62,667 bases of DNA, from positions 1 to 62,667 of the forward strand of contig JAAPAO010000146.1 in the NCBI GenBank assembly GCA_013115145.1, read 5' to 3'. A model generated the notes under the pieces. The model did not search any database and had not been told where the DNA came from. It saw only the letters and a list, made by a program, of their open reading frames with translations. The stretch comes from Perkinsus chesapeaki ATCC PRA-425. Lineage: Eukaryota > Protista > Perkinsozoa. Positions within the stretch are counted from its first letter, which is position 1. Each line of letters opens with the position of its first letter. Both the position numbers and the translations under genes were made by a program. Of the stretch, positions 20,309 through 45,405 are shown piece by piece.

Positions 20309-20381
20309 GGGGGACTAGCTCAAATGGTAGAGCGCTCGCTTAGCAAGCGAGAGGCACCGGGATCGATGCCCGGGTTCTCCA
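20309..20381 (+). tRNA. tRNA-Ala(AGC)
   Basis: Identical to the 73-nt gene at 1611; followed by TTTT. Confidence 0.97.
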
Positions 20382-20622
20382 TTTTGGCGAACTCCCATCG
20401 ATTCGCATCCCACCGACGTTGGCATATAAGATGCTTGTATCGTATCACACATGAAACTAGTGACTAATAGTTACTGGAAGTCACTGAAACTCGGAGACGG
20501 AAGCGAAAACCGAATTTACTGGAGCCAGTCAATTCTTTTTCTGTCTCGAATGCAGTGTACGGTGCAGGAGTCGAGAATAAAGCGTCCGGACACAATCAGT
20601 GTCTACCAAAGTTCATAACAAC

Positions 20623-20696
20623 TGGTCGATGCAGGGCTCGAACCTGCGACCCTCGCGTTATTAGCACGATGCTCTAACCGACTGAGCTAAACGACC
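20623..20696 (-). tRNA. tRNA-Ile(AAT)
   Basis: Reverse complement GGTCGTTTAGCTCAGTCGGTTAGAGCATCGTGCTAATAACGCGAGGGTCGCAGGTTCGAGCCCTGCATCGACCA; anticodon loop CTAATAA. Confidence 0.97.
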
Positions 20697-21109
20697 ACTG
20701 AAAACAATTGTACAAGAAGCATGTCCACCAATCCTATACAGAGACACATACAGTGCGAAAATTGCTAAAAGTGAATACTGCTAAAAACACAAGCGCTAGA
20801 GATTCAGCCAGCTGGATGGCAAGCTAGACAGTCCTAACAAATGAGCGCACATGTTACAGCGCCGTATATACCACTGAATTGCTCTCCGGTGCTGACGATT
20901 GTAGTCATCGATAAAACAGCTGCGCTCGCCTTGGCACGCACGCACGCCCAAAGCGCGCAGGGTGCGCATCGACCGGCACATGATGTGCCGCACATCCCTA
21001 GCATGTTGTGGTAGATTCTTTTCTCCTCACACTGATTACCAGTTAAATAAAAAGTATTAAAATTGAAGGATCCTTGACGGAAGGTGCCGGGTAAGGAAAA
21101 CCTAACAAC

Positions 21110-21182
21110 GGGGGACTAGCTCAAATGGTAGAGCGCTCGCTTAGCAAGCGAGAGGCACCGGGATCGATGCCCGGGTTCTCCA
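21110..21182 (+). tRNA. tRNA-Ala(AGC)
   Basis: Third identical copy. Confidence 0.97.
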
Positions 21183-34333: not shown

Positions 34334-36140
34334 TTAGCTAGGCCAAGGATACCAAAAAACGGCAGCAACAACCCTGCAGGTCCAAACCACTAAACGGCAA
34401 ACCCAAGTGAAATAAACATCAGAAACACATCCCCTCATGCAAAGTGAAGCAGCATCACCAATAACCCCTCGGGGCGGGCATCGTACTAGAGTAGCCATTC
34501 TTCCAAGTCCTCCTGTTAGTGTAGCTCTTATGGGGACCTGAAGAGTGTGTTGGAGTGGAATCTATTGACGGGCTTTACCTCCACTACACCAGATACCATT
34601 CGGCCATCGCATTGCATAGCCGCCCTTGAAGCTCGGGAGGAGACGAACCTGACGGATCGTGGAGAAGAATGACACATGCGATGCTGAAACGCACACCTCA
34701 GCCGGTAGCAAGCAAATTACGTAAGGGCGTGTGGTGTAGTGGTATCACGTCTGCTTTGCATGCAGAAGGCCCCGGGTTCAAACCCCGGCACGTCCATTTA
34801 TTCCTATTCCTTTCCCATTCGTTACCTTCATAAAGAGTGTATCCTCCTTGTCTATCATATATCGTAACTTGTACAGCGTGTCATGGAGCAGGTCCGGGAA
34901 TCTCTCCCAATCCAAGTCTTGCAAGAATGCTATGAGAATCTCCCGTTCCGGCTGAAACCAAAGGAATCAACTGGCCCGAATCCGCCGCTGCGAAACTTCT
35001 ACAACTTGCTGGCTCTCATACTCCTCCATGTTCAGTATTCTCACTGGGCTTTGCGTACAGAACCAAGCAGCATACTCCCTAAGGAATGTATCCGCACATC
35101 CCGCTAACACTTCCTCGTCTTGAGGTGCTGCAAGGTACGCTTCTAAGGAGTGTTCAATCCTTTAGTCTACTCCAATGAGCCCAGGGTAATACATTACCTA
35201 CTGCCCGCTTCAACTTCTCACTTACTCCATCACGCCCAGCATACAGCCGTAATCTGCCACGCGCAGCCAACTGATGATCATCAAGGTCCGCAAAGCCTGT
35301 GATCTTCTTGAACGACAACATTGACTCGAACTCCATCAGCGCCTGATAATGTATTCCCCTCCTCCATAAATTATATTACTCCCTCATCGCCCTCCAACTC
35401 CTCCAGTTGCCCTCGTTCAACCGCCTCCCCTAATCTGCCCTTCGCTTCTTTATACGGGGTTGATGACATAAAGTCCTGCTTGAACCATCTGCCGAGATGC
35501 TCTAGCGTCATCGCCGGATCTCCCCCAGTTATCTGAACACCAGTCATCCTGACCCCAGAGGGGTCTAAACACCTCTGTTGATCGTCAGCGACGGGAGGTA
35601 TACACATTTTACCGTACAGTGTATGGCATCTAGTCAAGTGCCATTATGCTACCAATGAAGCGAATTCCAGAAAATGATGTATCGAATCAAGGACTGCCCG
35701 ATCTAGTGTCGACGCGAGGAAGAGAGTCTACTAAAAAAGTCAATACTACCACTCTTTGCATCATTCCACCATGCCACAGCTGCACAGTTGGGACATTCAT
35801 TACGAATATGGATGCAGCATGCTCTGGTTGCTTCAATATATCAACCGTCATAATGCCTAGCTTCGGATACTCCTTCTCAACGGCCTACAACGACCTCTGT
35901 GTATCGAAGAGGGCAAGAAAGAGACCCCATCAAATCTTCGGTACATAAACAGGAGAATGGTATAACCTGTATAAGATGCCGCGTCCTATCCTCCACATGC
36001 TCCGCTGTCGCCACAACCATCAGCAGATCACTCGCCCCCCGTGTGCCCCGAGGATGCCTTAGCAGCTGGCGGAATCTGCTGGGGGAGGCAGGCGCGGCCT
36101 GCACGGCGGCGGCCTCCATCCGTAAGACGCTCTGCAACAT
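34334..36140 (-). CDS. Thioredoxin-fold plus helical/TPR-like protein (YbbN/CnoX-like); boundaries approximate
   Basis: KEYPKLGIMTVDILKQPEHAASIFVMNVPTVQLWHGG (Trx fold, no CxxC seen); helical C-terminal exons PEREILIAFLQDLDWERFPDLLHDTLYKLRYMI. Confidence 0.55.
34725..34796 (+). tRNA. tRNA-Ala(TGC)
   Basis: GGGCGTG/CACGTCC acceptor with G3:U70, anticodon loop TTTGCAT, T-loop TTCAAAC. Confidence 0.96.
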
Positions 36141-41953: not shown

Positions 41954-42877
41954 TTAGGTATGCTTGGTGAGGTATTCGGCCACGCCTTCAGTGCTGGCCT
42001 TCATAGCCTCTTGCCCACGATGCCACGCCACCGGGCAAACTTGATCACCGTGACTGTCGGTGAACTCTAACGCATCCAAAATCTGAAATAGCACAACATA
42101 TGCAATTAAATTCAGCCCTACTACAACAAACAAGGATGCAGGTTGTTACTGAGCCATGATACTCACCCTAAGGACTTCATCAACATTCCTTCCCAATGGT
42201 AAATCATTCTTCAACTCAGATCGCACTTTACCCTCCTTATCAATGATGAACACACCACGGCAAGCAACACCAGGCTCGTCCAACAAGACCTGAAGTGCCC
42301 AACTAGCCCGACCAACAACAGCTTCATTAAACCTACTTGATAAGCCTTGGAAATCTCGTGCTTATTGTCGCTAATCATAGGATGGTTGATCTGCGTACCA
42401 AGGCCCCCCGCCGTTTTGGCGGTGTTCTTCCAAGCCTTATGGACATCAGCCGAGTCCACAGAGCATCCAAGAACCTGACAACGATAATATAACCTTTCGA
42501 ATGCATACAGTCCAAAGCCTACCTCAGCACCTCTCTTTTTGAACTCTTCCAGCTTGTTATGGAATTCGATAGTCTCCGTGGCGCATACAAAGGTGAAATC
42601 GCCCGGATAGAAGTAGAGTACTACGTACCTTACACACTCAAGATGCAATAACCAGCCTTACTGATTGAATGCCTTACTTTCCCTTGTAATCGGATGTGTT
42701 AATAGTCTTAAAGGTATTGTCAGGCATGCATGCCTTAGCCTCGAATGAGGGTGCTTGCTTACCAATAAGCGTGCCGAATGATCGGAATGCTAAAGGTGCC
42801 GCAAATCTGGCCATTGCAGGAGAGGCCAGACGAGCTGCCATCGGGGCGGCCATGCGAGCTGACAACGCGCCAAACAT
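41954..42877 (-). CDS. Typical 2-Cys peroxiredoxin (Prx1/AhpC), probably mitochondrial
   Basis: Arg/Ala-rich acid-free leader; [34 protein letters not shown]. Confidence 0.93.
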
Positions 42878-43183
42878 TTTAAACCGGACAAAAACTTCTG
42901 ACAAGTCAAAAATTTGTACCAAAAACCGAAAAAAGGTTCGTCCTTCGAATGGGCGCTTCACCGTGACAAATCATCTGTTTGAGAGCGAGAAGGGCGGTGA
43001 ACCACTAGCAGGGCTAAACAAGTCCATCAAAGCGGACAAGCCACACAAAAAATTCATTGGCAAAGAAAGGCGGGCGCGGATTAAACTAGCGGAGCGAAGC
43101 GACTCATGTTTGGCCATTTTCATTGGCCGATTATGTCCACACAAGATACCTGCTGCCTGAAACAGTTACAGAAACACGTCATG

Positions 43184-44858
43184 CTACAGTGGCTTGCTCT
43201 TCAGTGCATTTTTAGCCTCATAAGTTGCATATCTGACACAACGAAAAGCTCATTTCTCTGCAATCTGCACACAAAGCTTACAGCTGACCACATGCCGCGT
43301 CGATGGACCGGCCGAATGAATTTCTGAAGGAGGTCGTAATGCCCTCATTAGTTAGAATGGACTGAAACTGGTTCCAGTCCTCGCAGCGTTTGAATGCTGT
43401 CGACACATCTCGTGCCTCGTTATATCTACCAGAGCATCGAGCCAAAGATGCCACCAGCAACTTACGGCAATAAATTAACGTGATAAAGGTAACTTGTTTG
43501 TTTCGGTCTCTCCTTAATAAGCTGGGCCAACGCTCGGGCGTGCCTATCATTGAGGAACGCTTGCGGGAAACGCCACTGTACGGTGATCACCTTTCCGTGT
43601 CATTAATCCCCTTCAACAGCAAATATGATATCCATATCCGCCTTCCAGTCCGCTTAATACGATCATCCAGCACATCGAACACCTGCCGCCCGGCTCAGTC
43701 AGCGCAGCCAGAGCATGCCAGCCTTGCCTTAGCGAAAGGATAAACCTTTTGGATCGGCATTATCTTCTCCCGTTCCTCTGGAAAGGGACTGTGCAGCGAG
43801 TACGCCACATTAGCCTGAATGAACGAGCGGGAAGAACCGAGCGCAGTATGGGCCTGCTGCTGCTGAAGGAGCCTCGCGGCTGAGACCTGACATACCTGCG
43901 GATGCAGCTCGGTGAGTTTGACTAAACCAGGGATGATCCCAATCGTGGAAATACTCATGCGCCTCGCCGATAGCCCAACAAGCTGAGGATCAGTCAGGAC
44001 CGATATAGCATTGAATATCTTCGGATTTGCCAATGGCTCCCCCATACCCATGAACGACACCGAATCCACCACGTTACCTGGTAACAAGCCCTATCTTAAA
44101 GTAGACCGCCACAAGTGTAGCTACCTGTAGCGCGGAAAGTGAGAACTTGCCCGACAATCTCATCGACGCTCAACTGCCTCTTCAATCCTAGCTTACCGGT
44201 AGCACAGAAACTACAGTTGAACGCGCAACCTGGAAATCGACCAGAGAATCTTCAGTAGTATTCTTCACTTCGAAAAGCGGCGCAGAGAGCCTTCCATACA
44301 TTGCCAGCCCATGTACTCACCGATCTGGCTGGAGACGCAGAGGCTCGTATGGGAACGGAAGTCCAAGCCAACGGCCTCAAACTTCCCACCGTCCTGCCGA
44401 CTTTCGAGCAGGAATTTATGAGCGAAATCGGCCGATCCCCTACAAAGCGGAAGATTCTAATACACTAGCAGTGACGCCCCTTTGGATTGACAAGCGTTCT
44501 CTAGAGCTTCCAGCACCTACTGCTCGAGGACTCGCAATGGCGAAAGGCTGTCGCCAAAACTAGCCTTCAGTTTGTCCCTAACCCGTTGTGGAACTCTATT
44601 GATAGCATCCGGTGAGCTGACCCCCTTCTTATAAATATCTTGTATCACCAGCCCGATTTGCCACTCTGGTGTATTCCTGCCAAACACAAAACATGCCAAG
44701 GCGTTCCGGTCTCCCAACACATCCCGCAAGCCTCTCGTGCCCCACAGGGAAAATTCATCGACTTTTCTGGTGCACGCGTCAAGCTTGGATTCCCTTTCCC
44801 CACCTTACTCCTTCTCCAGGCACTCTACAATATCCGTTAGTCGTTTTGACAACGCCAT
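43184..44858 (-). CDS. Cfr/RlmN-family radical SAM RNA methyltransferase, Cfr-like
   Basis: CVSSQIG|[64 protein letters not shown]|YATY. Confidence 0.9.
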
Positions 44859-45405
44859 TGCATGTCTCGGAATATGTTTACTCTGCTGGACTGTCGCAGC
44901 TATCGGCCGAGACAAGGCTTGCTGTGATTTGGCGCTCACAGCATTCATGGAATTCGTTAACTACAGCAGGAGTCCTCGGATATTGGTCGCCGTCCACTGT
45001 GAAGTTGAGCCCATCGAAGTTACGGTCCCTAGAATTCGTGAAAATCTAGGAATCTGCAACTCAGCCTCCACAATACAACGAAAGCATGCAGCACTCTCTG
45101 GCGGTTGAAAAATCTGCACGTATGCGCACGCGCACGCGTCAAAAAATAGAGGCGCGGATTCGAACCGGCGCAATTCACCACAAGGCTTGTCAGTAATGAC
45201 CAAATTGGTCCGCAGGCTGCCGACTAGCATACATGCCTAACTCGGCTCACGATACGTCCATCAGTGAAAATGGGTCACATAAAATCGTTAATTCCCGGTA
45301 TATTCGAAAAGTTCAGCATAGGTGCCGGAAATCCGTCCTCCTGTTTAAATTGAACATCATCATCTCAACAACATCATTGGTAGTTAATATCGATACCCTA
45401 CACCA

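Follow-up and report, generated by a model that had tools for sequence, protein, structure and literature searches.

A spliced RlmN/Cfr-family methyl synthase gene of Perkinsus chesapeaki from a myzozoan clade on the Cfr side of the family

The locus analyzed here raises the question of whether a nuclear, intron-containing gene resembling the bacterial multidrug-resistance methyltransferase Cfr serves antibiotic resistance or ordinary translation in a marine parasite, and where in the cell its product might act. The window, that is, the whole stretch of 62,667 nucleotides from contig JAAPAO010000146.1 of Perkinsus chesapeaki ATCC PRA-425, carries this gene on the minus strand at positions 43184–44858. 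A first-pass annotation had read it as an old "antibiotic-resistance-type" gene, closer to Cfr than to RlmN, that leaves no room for an organellar leader and possibly protects the parasite's ribosome.

Gene structure, expression, and catalytic residues

The gene consists of 10 exons and nine introns, with a start codon ATG at 44858–44856 and a stop codon TAG at 43186–43184. The coding sequence of 1062 nt encodes 353 aa, and its sole stop is the terminal one. Introns 1 to 9 are 132, 81, 91, 47, 81, 45, 47, 40, and 49 nt in length; eight of nine have GT-AG borders and one has GC-AG borders. All nine exon junctions are gap-free when aligned to orthologues, and the coordinates and peptides given by the first-pass annotation were correct, every quoted block being found in the exon translations. 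The joined 353-aa model was used for alignment, trees, and pairwise identity, whereas profile scores were obtained from single exons.

Exon 1 (44809–44858; all features are on the minus strand), read from the sequence, codes for 16 residues plus 2 nt. Exon 2 (44521–44676) encodes a putative N-terminal RlmN_N-type domain, as judged by a weak colinear match to positions 15–62 of the Cfr models and by its gap-free alignment with orthologues. Cys103, aligned with RlmN C118 and Cfr C105, lies in exon 3 (44321–44439), which matches the RlmN model TIGR00048 at positions 77–113. The radical-SAM cluster motif C110-x3-C114-x2-C117 (CAFNCSFC), a CxxxCxxC signature for the [4Fe-4S] cluster, is located in exon 4 (44125–44229) and is recognized by Pfam PF04055, the Cfr and RlmN models, and alignment columns. 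Exon 5 (43896–44077) contains the MGMGE motif (M153–E157) and is the block most like Cfr. Exons 6 (43728–43814), 7 (43591–43682), and 8 (43466–43543; ending in YLYHVNLL) match positions 203–229, 232–263, and 262–289 of the Cfr models, respectively. Exon 9 (43282–43425), also matched by the Cfr models, carries Cys335 in SIDAACGQ, the methyl-carrying cysteine aligned with RlmN C355 and Cfr C338. Exon 10 with the stop codon (43184–43232) encodes a tail that lacks a hydrophobic segment, based on orthologue comparison and Kyte–Doolittle values. Taken together, exons 2 and 4–9 match the NCBIfam Cfr models colinearly over profile positions 15–335 of 338, and exon 5 alone does so at E=1.7e-24, far beyond chance. 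Pfam returned nearly nothing on single exons except for a weak Radical_SAM match because the exons are too short. With Cys335, the resolving Cys103, and MGMGE all aligned to their RlmN/Cfr counterparts, the protein is, as judged from its residues, an RlmN/Cfr-family radical-SAM RNA methyl synthase that retains every catalytic residue.

Joined forms of three of the nine introns (4, 6, and 7) occur in contigs of a public run (X1), exactly as modelled and 100% identical to the window. This is the only run with the locus; it provides two short contigs that include neither the 5′ nor the 3′ end, and its labelling as RNA is a guess. At intron 4 (44078–44124; 47 nt, GT-AG), a contig reaches 44080 and its loose end continues into the letters of exon 4. 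At intron 6 (43683–43727), the joint 43681>43727 skips 45 nt, and although it has 3 nt of slack, its sole standard reading is GC-AG (GCAAGG...CAG). At intron 7 (43544–43590; GT-AG, or CT..AC on the plus strand), the joint skips 47 nt with the cut at +1. Intron 5 (43815–43895) is 81 nt long, in frame, and stop-free; it derives from the gene model and is crossed by no RNA contig. Because joined forms are present in these contigs, spliced copies exist, and the gene is spliced and expressed, a processed DNA copy being a remote alternative.

Intron 5 matches an intron of the Vitrella orthologue in position and phase, and intron 6 matches one of the Effrenium orthologue; chance alone would give approximately 0.1–0.2 such matches per pair, and splice borders in dinoflagellates are ambiguous. 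The 12-residue peptide spanning intron 9 recurs unchanged in Hematodinium (orthologue P0188, a GEMP01 accession; PMC6642578), and the YAxYEAK motif near the C-terminus is general across the myzozoan clade described below. ARAGORN and Rfam gave no match inside or beside the gene.

Position between RlmN and Cfr

The protein is 48–55% identical to myzozoan orthologues, 40–42% to Cfr enzymes, and 33–36% to RlmN, with whole-model values of 41.5% to Cfr versus 33% to Escherichia coli RlmN. For exon 5, the comparison with Cfr (PDB 9p0p) gives 68 bits and that with RlmN 30 bits, and the CfrAB model gives 86.8 bits versus 40.4 for that of RlmN; its identity is 60–65% to cfr, cfr(B), and cfr(C), 55–65% over the Cfr enzymes with Cfr(D) included, and approximately 42% to rlmN. 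These values uphold the earlier observation of greater similarity to Cfr, and the Cfr and RlmN blocks quoted for that comparison are present in the Staphylococcus aureus Cfr and E. coli RlmN sequences. The GEP triplet, previously regarded as RlmN-like, is not specific to RlmN because Pro occupies the same site in half of the bacterial Cfr-family rows.

In a careful maximum-likelihood tree, the protein falls within a 19-row, all-myzozoan clade (100/100) composed of dinoflagellates, Hematodinium, chromerids, Plasmodium, piroplasms, and Eimeria, in which the branching tracks the species tree; apicomplexans and chromerids separate from dinoflagellates, Hematodinium, and the window protein (92/90). 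A 103-row tree recovers the same myzozoan monophyly (SH-aLRT 100). The Cfr branch, comprising the verified Cfr enzymes and the myzozoan clade, is split from the RlmN rows (100/99), and the verified Cfr enzymes form a 25-row clade (97/94) without the myzozoan proteins. Forcing the myzozoan clade and verified Cfr together costs 52 lnL units (AU p=0.0003, for a group that was named only after the tree had been seen). A phylogeny with Cfr, Cfr-like, and RlmN sets, proposed earlier as a check, thus places the protein neither inside RlmN nor among verified Cfr. On this placement, the gene is inherited vertically within Myzozoa and is an orthologue of the myzozoan "RlmN-like" enzyme (TgRlmN family), which belongs to the Cfr side of the family within a subfamily of eukaryotes. 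The gene is old, as had been supposed, and the reading of an intron-containing nuclear gene on the Cfr side of the family agrees with the gene model, the spliced contigs, and the tree. The guess that eukaryotic homologues had already been catalogued was also right (PMC2836569, PMC5749711), eukaryotic members of the Cfr branch having been described in 2010 (PMC2836569).

A search with the open stretch of exons 5–6 among 50%-representative proteins found none above 66% identity and none from Perkinsus. Perkinsus and land-plant proteins were absent from the best 120 matches obtained with a dinoflagellate orthologue, a eukaryotic relative, and a profile of a second eukaryotic group; bacterial Cfr-family proteins at 44–49% identity were present among them. 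In bacterial and archaeal genomes, nothing exceeded 45% identity among the matches listed, and "bacterial-looking" metagenome relatives annotated as C8-methyltransferases sit on eukaryotic contigs, which leaves no nameable donor among bacteria. That the family occurs mainly in bacteria might point to contamination or a decaying pseudogene in place of a functional host gene. This possibility was rejected as virtually negligible, being contradicted by nine spliceosomal introns, three of them confirmed by joined contigs, by the intact frame and catalytic residues, and by a placement that follows the species tree.

The specificity residues set the protein apart from true Cfr. Six residues of S. 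aureus Cfr, Y97, W101, S103, S151, Q329, and F330, are needed for C8 activity; Q329T pushes the enzyme toward single methylation, and W101R and Y97E abolish activity (PMC12887959). The window protein has F, H, S, S, S, and F at these sites, respectively, so that W101 and Q329 are not kept. Across the myzozoan rows, His is found at W101 in 29 of 29 and Ser at Q329 in 24 of 29, and F97, H101, S103, N328, and F330 are present in all or nearly all. The substrate loop at Cfr position 99 is one residue shorter than in Cfr and equals the RlmN length. The NCBIfam Cfr equivalog models have cut-offs of 530 (NF000424), 550 (TIGR04432), and 468 (NF011024); five full-length orthologues scored 371–422 bits, below all of these, compared with 629–649 for a true Cfr control, and the window exons gave a rough sum of approximately 240 bits. 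With TIGR00048 (RlmN cut-off 290), the orthologues reached 253–276 bits and E. coli RlmN 594, the window exon sum being approximately 150. A true Cfr was therefore rejected on tree position, on the missing Q329 and W101, and on the orthologue scores, and nesting within RlmN was rejected on the split of the Cfr branch from RlmN rows and the TIGR00048 cut-off missed by the orthologues.

The same results bear on the resistance reading, in which a Cfr-type enzyme would modify the A2503-equivalent of cytosolic LSU rRNA to m8A, with or without m2A, and thereby shield the ribosome from peptidyl-transferase-centre inhibitors. The greater similarity to Cfr than to RlmN, the retained Cfr-type S103, S151, and F330, and the lack of a leader with an orthologue-type start are in its favor. 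The "antibiotic-resistance-type" label nevertheless finds no support, given the position outside verified Cfr, the absence of Q329 and W101, and the subthreshold orthologues, and related bacterial Cfr-like proteins do not methylate A2503 (PMC5062987). Protection of a parasite's ribosome fares no better: free-living photosynthetic chromerids and dinoflagellates keep the gene, which indicates that it is not a parasite adaptation. We consider this role very unlikely; there is no support for it, and by its sequence affinities the gene is a copy of a housekeeping gene known across its relatives.

Cellular location and probable function

With the start at 44858, residue 103 is the conserved Cys of C-x-SSQ-GC, which occupies positions 102–110 in approximately 40 orthologues; these begin 5–10 residues ahead of the conserved N-terminal helix. 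A start matching these orthologues would leave the protein without an N-terminal leader. The claim that no room exists for a leader stands with this start and falls with another: an in-frame ATG at 44948–44946, with no stop before 44858, would add 30 acid-free residues (MNAVSAKSQQALSRPIAATVQQSKHIPRHA; 44859–44948, minus strand, from the ORF list). An in-frame stop TAG lies just upstream at 44963–44961. The possible extension has no family match in Pfam or NCBIfam profiles and no coverage by RNA contigs.

If translation began at ATG 44948, the leader could import the protein into mitochondria, where it would methylate either imported tRNAs or the organelle's own fragmented LSU rRNA. In line with this, the frame is open, the leader contains K/R/H and many S/A/Q with no D/E, extensions of 15–30 aa occur in a few orthologues (P0163, beginning MAAAAVGRVARRAPAVARS..., P0191, and P0243), and 44948 is the first in-frame AUG if the transcript includes it. 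We regard a mitochondrial enzyme as unlikely, however, given the starts of the approximately 40 orthologues, the lack of any family match for the extension, two out-of-frame ATGs (44944 and 44863) between 44948 and 44858, which are common in leader sequences, and the orientation toward the cytosol of TgRlmN, which was localized in 2018 to the outer mitochondrial membrane (PMC5749711). TgRlmN has also been counted among the clients of cytosolic Fe-S assembly (PMC11481526, PMC12674569). In the window protein, Cys335 is followed by a hydrophilic tail of 19 residues (maximum Kyte–Doolittle −0.47) that forms no C-terminal anchor. A hydrophobic C-terminal segment was likewise found in none of approximately 45 orthologues with a locatable CGQL motif, coccidian rows (Besnoitia, Eimeria, and Cyclospora) left out, the maximum 19-residue Kyte–Doolittle mean being 1.09; the tail anchor looks like a trait of some members rather than of the myzozoan clade. 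Hematodinium has lost its plastid and keeps the gene, which argues against a plastid enzyme.

The reading that we favor, with some confidence, is a cytosolic enzyme whose most likely targets are A37-type adenines in tRNAs of the cytosol, with methylation at C2 likelier than at C8, and which would serve translation housekeeping and not drug resistance. By the chemistry established for this family, a first SAM would methylate Cys335, and a second SAM would be cleaved at the [4Fe-4S] cluster to yield a 5′-deoxyadenosyl radical that activates the Cys335 methyl. The methyl would then add to the adenine carbon of the RNA, and Cys103 would free the protein–RNA adduct. The tRNA analogy leans on Arabidopsis RLMNL3, probably a more distant relative than bacterial Cfr-family proteins since no land plant appears among the best 120 matches. 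Among bacteria, Cfr-like proteins that fall outside verified Cfr did not methylate A2503 and must have other targets, as yet unknown (PMC5062987); the window protein could likewise act on an unexpected RNA.

Two departures from the tRNA reading concern the substrate and the methylated carbon. A cytosolic enzyme acting on 28S rRNA (m2A at the A2503-equivalent) or on another RNA, and not on tRNA, is unlikely. A2503 is the founding substrate of the family, but we know of no precedent for m2A in cytosolic rRNA. The unknown targets of Cfr-like proteins (PMC5062987) leave some room for a 28S substrate, against which stands the sole characterized eukaryotic non-organellar RlmN relative, which acts on tRNA (PMC10838301). 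The greater similarity of the myzozoan clade to Cfr than to RlmN and its Cfr-type S103, S151, and F330 lend C8 chemistry some probability; we give only a small chance to C8 or mixed C2/C8 adenine methylation by the myzozoan Cfr-side enzymes on cytosolic tRNA or 28S rRNA. If true, m8A would for the first time be known apart from bacterial resistance, and Cfr-type chemistry would have a physiological role.

Significance and comparison with known systems

For this genome the annotation is settled: the locus holds an intact and expressed gene of the RlmN/Cfr family, and it ought not to be labelled as a resistance gene. What is new is this parasite's copy; the kind of gene is already known across its relatives. 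In its specificity residues the myzozoan clade lies between RlmN and Cfr, and its substrate and methylated carbon would bear on the origin of Cfr-type chemistry. TgRlmN is reported to be important for Toxoplasma growth (CRISPR score −1.82, quoted in PMC5749711), and an anchor-free orthologue could suit biochemistry better than the anchored 68-kDa protein.

The closest known counterparts are the myzozoan orthologues, annotated as "radical SAM protein, putative" in Plasmodium and "Cfr family domain-containing protein" in Theileria and also found in Chromera, Vitrella, dinoflagellates, and Hematodinium, which share clade, length, start, and clade-specific residues with the window protein. TgRlmN, known here by description with no T. 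gondii sequence in the set, differs in being a 68-kDa protein tail-anchored in the outer mitochondrial membrane (PMC5749711), whereas the window protein has 353 aa and no hydrophobic C-terminus. Cfr, Cfr(B), Cfr(C), and Cfr(D), the 23S A2503 C8-methyltransferases of PhLOPSA resistance, belong to the same branch (100/99) and share the catalytic cysteines, MGMGE, S103, S151, and F330. They differ at Q329 (Ser in the window), W101 (His), and Y97 (Phe) and in their longer loop, and their mobile genes contrast with a nuclear, spliced, and vertically inherited one. The clostridial "Cfr-like" proteins (ClCp, C. sporogenes) are similarly Cfr-branch members that are not resistance enzymes, but they sit with verified Cfr in the 25-row clade that leaves out the myzozoan proteins. 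E. coli RlmN, which forms m2A2503 of 23S rRNA and m2A37 of tRNA, resembles the window protein in fold family, presumed chemistry, loop length at Cfr position 99, and the Pro after MGMGE; the window protein, at 33% identity, falls outside the RlmN rows and lacks the RlmN-type E97, R101, N151, K328, and R330. Arabidopsis RLMNL3 (At3g19630), the cytosolic tRNA m2A37 methyltransferase, is likened by description only, as a eukaryotic, non-plastid member of the RlmN/Cfr family. It was placed with alveolates in the Cfr branch by Kaminska 2010 (PMC2836569), and slightly nearer RlmN than Cfr by Duan 2024, whose clade III was named without alveolates (PMC10838301).

Gene structure and splicing

The gene encoding the RlmN/Cfr-family protein lies on the minus strand, extends from the ATG at 44858-44856 to the TAG stop at 43186-43184, and comprises 10 exons separated by nine short introns (132, 81, 91, 47, 81, 45, 47, 40, and 49 nt for introns 1 to 9). 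Eight of nine introns have GT-AG borders and intron 6 is GC-AG (GCAAGG...CAG); splicing yields a CDS of 353 codons (1062 nt) with a single terminal stop. The first-pass annotation had given identical coordinates, and all of its quoted peptide blocks were recovered in the exon translations. In an exon-by-exon NCBIfam search, exons 2 and 4-9 match Cfr models colinearly (positions 15-335 of 338), exon 3 matches the RlmN model (positions 77-113), and exon 5 alone reaches E=1.7e-24.

The locus was identified at 100% identity in one public sequencing run (X1), the RNA label of which is a guess only and the contigs of which leave the 5′ and 3′ ends of the gene uncovered. One X1 contig joins 43542 to 43590, skipping the 47 nt of intron 7, and 43681 to 43727, skipping the 45 nt of intron 6; the latter joint has three bases of slack, with GC-AG as its sole standard reading. 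A second contig stops at 44080 with a loose end of exon 4 sequence, which indicates splicing of intron 4. Spliced copies of this gene clearly exist, and the gene model, profile matches, and X1 joints confirm the earlier observation of a Cfr-like, intron-containing gene.

The remaining six junctions are supported by homology. Alignment with the Vitrella and Effrenium orthologues is gap-free at every exon junction, and a 12-residue peptide across intron 9 is identical in the Hematodinium orthologue (P0188, assigned through accession GEMP01; PMC6642578), which indicates that the stop immediately after ...CGQL is removed by splicing. Two of nine introns coincide in position and phase with introns of orthologues, intron 5 in Vitrella and intron 6 in Effrenium, which is suggestive of the age of the gene, short of proof. 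In an exact-match reconstruction, the Effrenium voratum orthologue (L090) contains 21 introns with mostly GC or GA donors, one of which coincides in position with the lone GC-AG intron of P. chesapeaki.

Approximately 290 nt upstream of the ATG, a tRNA 3′-end-like stretch (45150-45185, minus strand) contains a T-loop/B-box (GGTTCGAATCC) and an acceptor-like tail, followed by TTTTTT; nothing was called there by ARAGORN or Rfam. Given the flanking GTGAGC at 45250 and ...TGCAG at 45113, it could lie within a 5′-UTR intron. The downstream neighbor (42211-42961, minus strand) looks like a peroxiredoxin gene, the first exon of which opens with a presequence-like leader. Five tRNA genes (1610-1684, 20309-20381, 20622-20697, 21110-21182, and 34725-34796) are present in the window, representing Ala-AGC (three copies), Ile-AAT, and Ala-TGC.

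Phylogenetic position

The closest full-length proteins are eukaryotic (48-55% identity). Relatives were identified in dinoflagellates (Effrenium, Alexandrium, Karlodinium, Prorocentrum, and Symbiodiniaceae), Hematodinium, Chromera, Vitrella, and apicomplexans (Plasmodium, Babesia, Theileria, Eimeria, and Besnoitia). In a careful maximum-likelihood tree of 66 rows, drawn from a comparison set without plant RLMNL3 and without other Perkinsus sequences, the protein falls within a 19-row all-myzozoan clade (support 100/100), in which apicomplexans and chromerids are separated from dinoflagellates, Hematodinium, the P. chesapeaki protein, and metagenome contigs (92/90). This internal branching follows the species tree, in agreement with a quick tree of 103 rows, and the position of the P. 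chesapeaki protein fits a dinozoan outside the dinoflagellate and Hematodinium group.

Green-plant, alveolate, and choanoflagellate proteins were assigned to the Cfr branch by Kaminska et al. (2010, PMC2836569). The myzozoan clade lies inside a Cfr branch whose separation from the RlmN rows has 100/99 support; nesting within RlmN is rejected. The clade is located outside a 25-row clade (97/94) containing the verified Cfr enzymes, which comprises Cfr, Cfr(B), Cfr(C), Cfr(D), Bacillus and Paenibacillus Cfr-family proteins, and a second eukaryotic group. A constrained tree that unites the myzozoan clade with four of these proteins (Cfr, Cfr(B), Cfr(D), and the one from Bacillus), a group named after the tree had been inspected, is worse by 52 log-likelihood units (AU p=0.0003).

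Several metagenome proteins labeled "adenine-C8 methyltransferase" by IMG sit on compact eukaryotic contigs, next to U-box, TAP42, proteasome chaperone, and V-ATPase genes. The closest full-length relatives (53-55% identity), P0200 (L086 and L087) and P0193 (L088), are encoded on compact eukaryotic contigs, apparently without introns, and represent a marine lineage that the tree places on the dinozoan side; under the IMG label, such proteins pass as a bacterial enzyme. The separate second eukaryotic group includes Heterolobosea sp. BB2, Planoprotostelium fungivorum (annotated as "chloramphenicol/florfenicol resistance protein"), the EukProt entry "Partr", and P0235, counted as eukaryotic solely by tree position (the group being P0244, P0291, P0295, and P0235). 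Its nesting among bacterial Cfr-family proteins suggests that the Cfr branch entered eukaryotes more than once.

Similarity to Cfr and RlmN and specificity residues

The earlier view that the protein is closer to Cfr than to RlmN holds as far as the comparison goes, with bit scores and identities in agreement. For exon 5, the Cfr crystal-structure chain 9p0p gives 68 bits and RlmN chains give 30 bits; identity of this exon is 60-65% with cfr (plasmid), cfr(B), and cfr(C), 55% with cfr(D), and ~42% with rlmN. Over the whole model, identity amounts to 41.5% with S. aureus Cfr, compared with 35-36% for Firmicute RlmN and 33% for E. coli RlmN. The blocks quoted for both enzymes in the first-pass annotation were found in the fetched sequences, but its reading of GEP as RlmN-like fails, as half of the bacterial Cfr-family rows also carry Pro there.

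Under NCBI criteria, the myzozoan clade is neither Cfr nor RlmN. The P. chesapeaki protein was scored exon by exon. Five full-length orthologues reach 371-422 bits on three Cfr models, for which the cut-offs are 468-550, and 253-276 bits on RlmN TIGR00048 (cut-off 290), and the controls exceed the cut-offs (true Cfr 629-649 bits, E. coli RlmN 594-810 bits). According to Fruci et al. (2026, PMC12887959), Cfr activity is abolished by Y97E and by W101R, and Q329T tips the enzyme away from double methylation. The equivalents in P. chesapeaki are Phe, His, and Ser, conserved in 29/29, 29/29, and 24/29 clade members, respectively. Cfr-type S103, S151, and F330 are retained, the loop is one residue shorter as in RlmN, and the catalytic set is complete (C110/C114/C117, MGMGE, C335, and C103). 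From these residues, the protein looks active, with specificity residues of mixed type.

Function and targeting

Of the earlier interpretation, a Cfr-side, old, intron-rich, and probably non-organellar gene stands, but the proposed role in antibiotic resistance is without support. This is a vertically inherited housekeeping gene, common to free-living photosynthetic relatives and to Hematodinium. Hematodinium has lost its plastid. Arabidopsis RLMNL3 produces m2A37 on two cytosolic tRNAs and m8A was not found in Arabidopsis (Duan et al., 2024, PMC10838301). For Cfr-like proteins of clostridia, Stojkovic et al. (2016, PMC5062987) found no methylation of A2503. Judging from relatives, the most likely function would be adenine methylation at an A37-type site of cytosolic tRNA, with C2 likelier than C8. 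We found no report in the literature measuring what a myzozoan enzyme produces; substrate and regiochemistry, where anything new would have to lie, are a matter for the whole clade.

Counted from the ATG at 44858, the Cys conserved in C-x-SSQ-GC falls at position 103, compared with 102-110 in ~40 orthologues, which identifies this ATG as the orthologue-type start. Such a start leaves no room for a leader, as previously claimed, but that claim overlooked an in-frame ATG at 44948. The frame is stop-free from there to 44858 and would add 30 residues without Asp or Glu (MNAVSAKSQQALSRPIAATVQQSKHIPRHA), and comparable N-terminal extensions occur in a few orthologues; the interval separating the two starts also contains two ATGs in other frames. 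A mitochondrial protein initiated at 44948 is conceivable, yet we regard it as unlikely, and favor the cytosolic protein starting at 44858.

The Toxoplasma gondii member, TgRlmN, is located at the outer mitochondrial membrane with its catalytic domain in the cytosol and a quoted CRISPR score of -1.82 (Padgett et al., 2018, PMC5749711), and in later Toxoplasma work it is counted among the cytosolic Fe-S clients (PMC11481526, PMC12674569). A hydrophobic C-terminal tail was found in none of ~45 myzozoan orthologues with a locatable C-terminal motif, which indicates that the TgRlmN anchor is not general in the present sample, in contrast to two papers that call it an early acquisition in myzozoan evolution. 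TgRlmN is reported to be tail-anchored (PMC5749711, PMC12674569), whereas the P. chesapeaki protein ends in a short, hydrophilic C-terminus.
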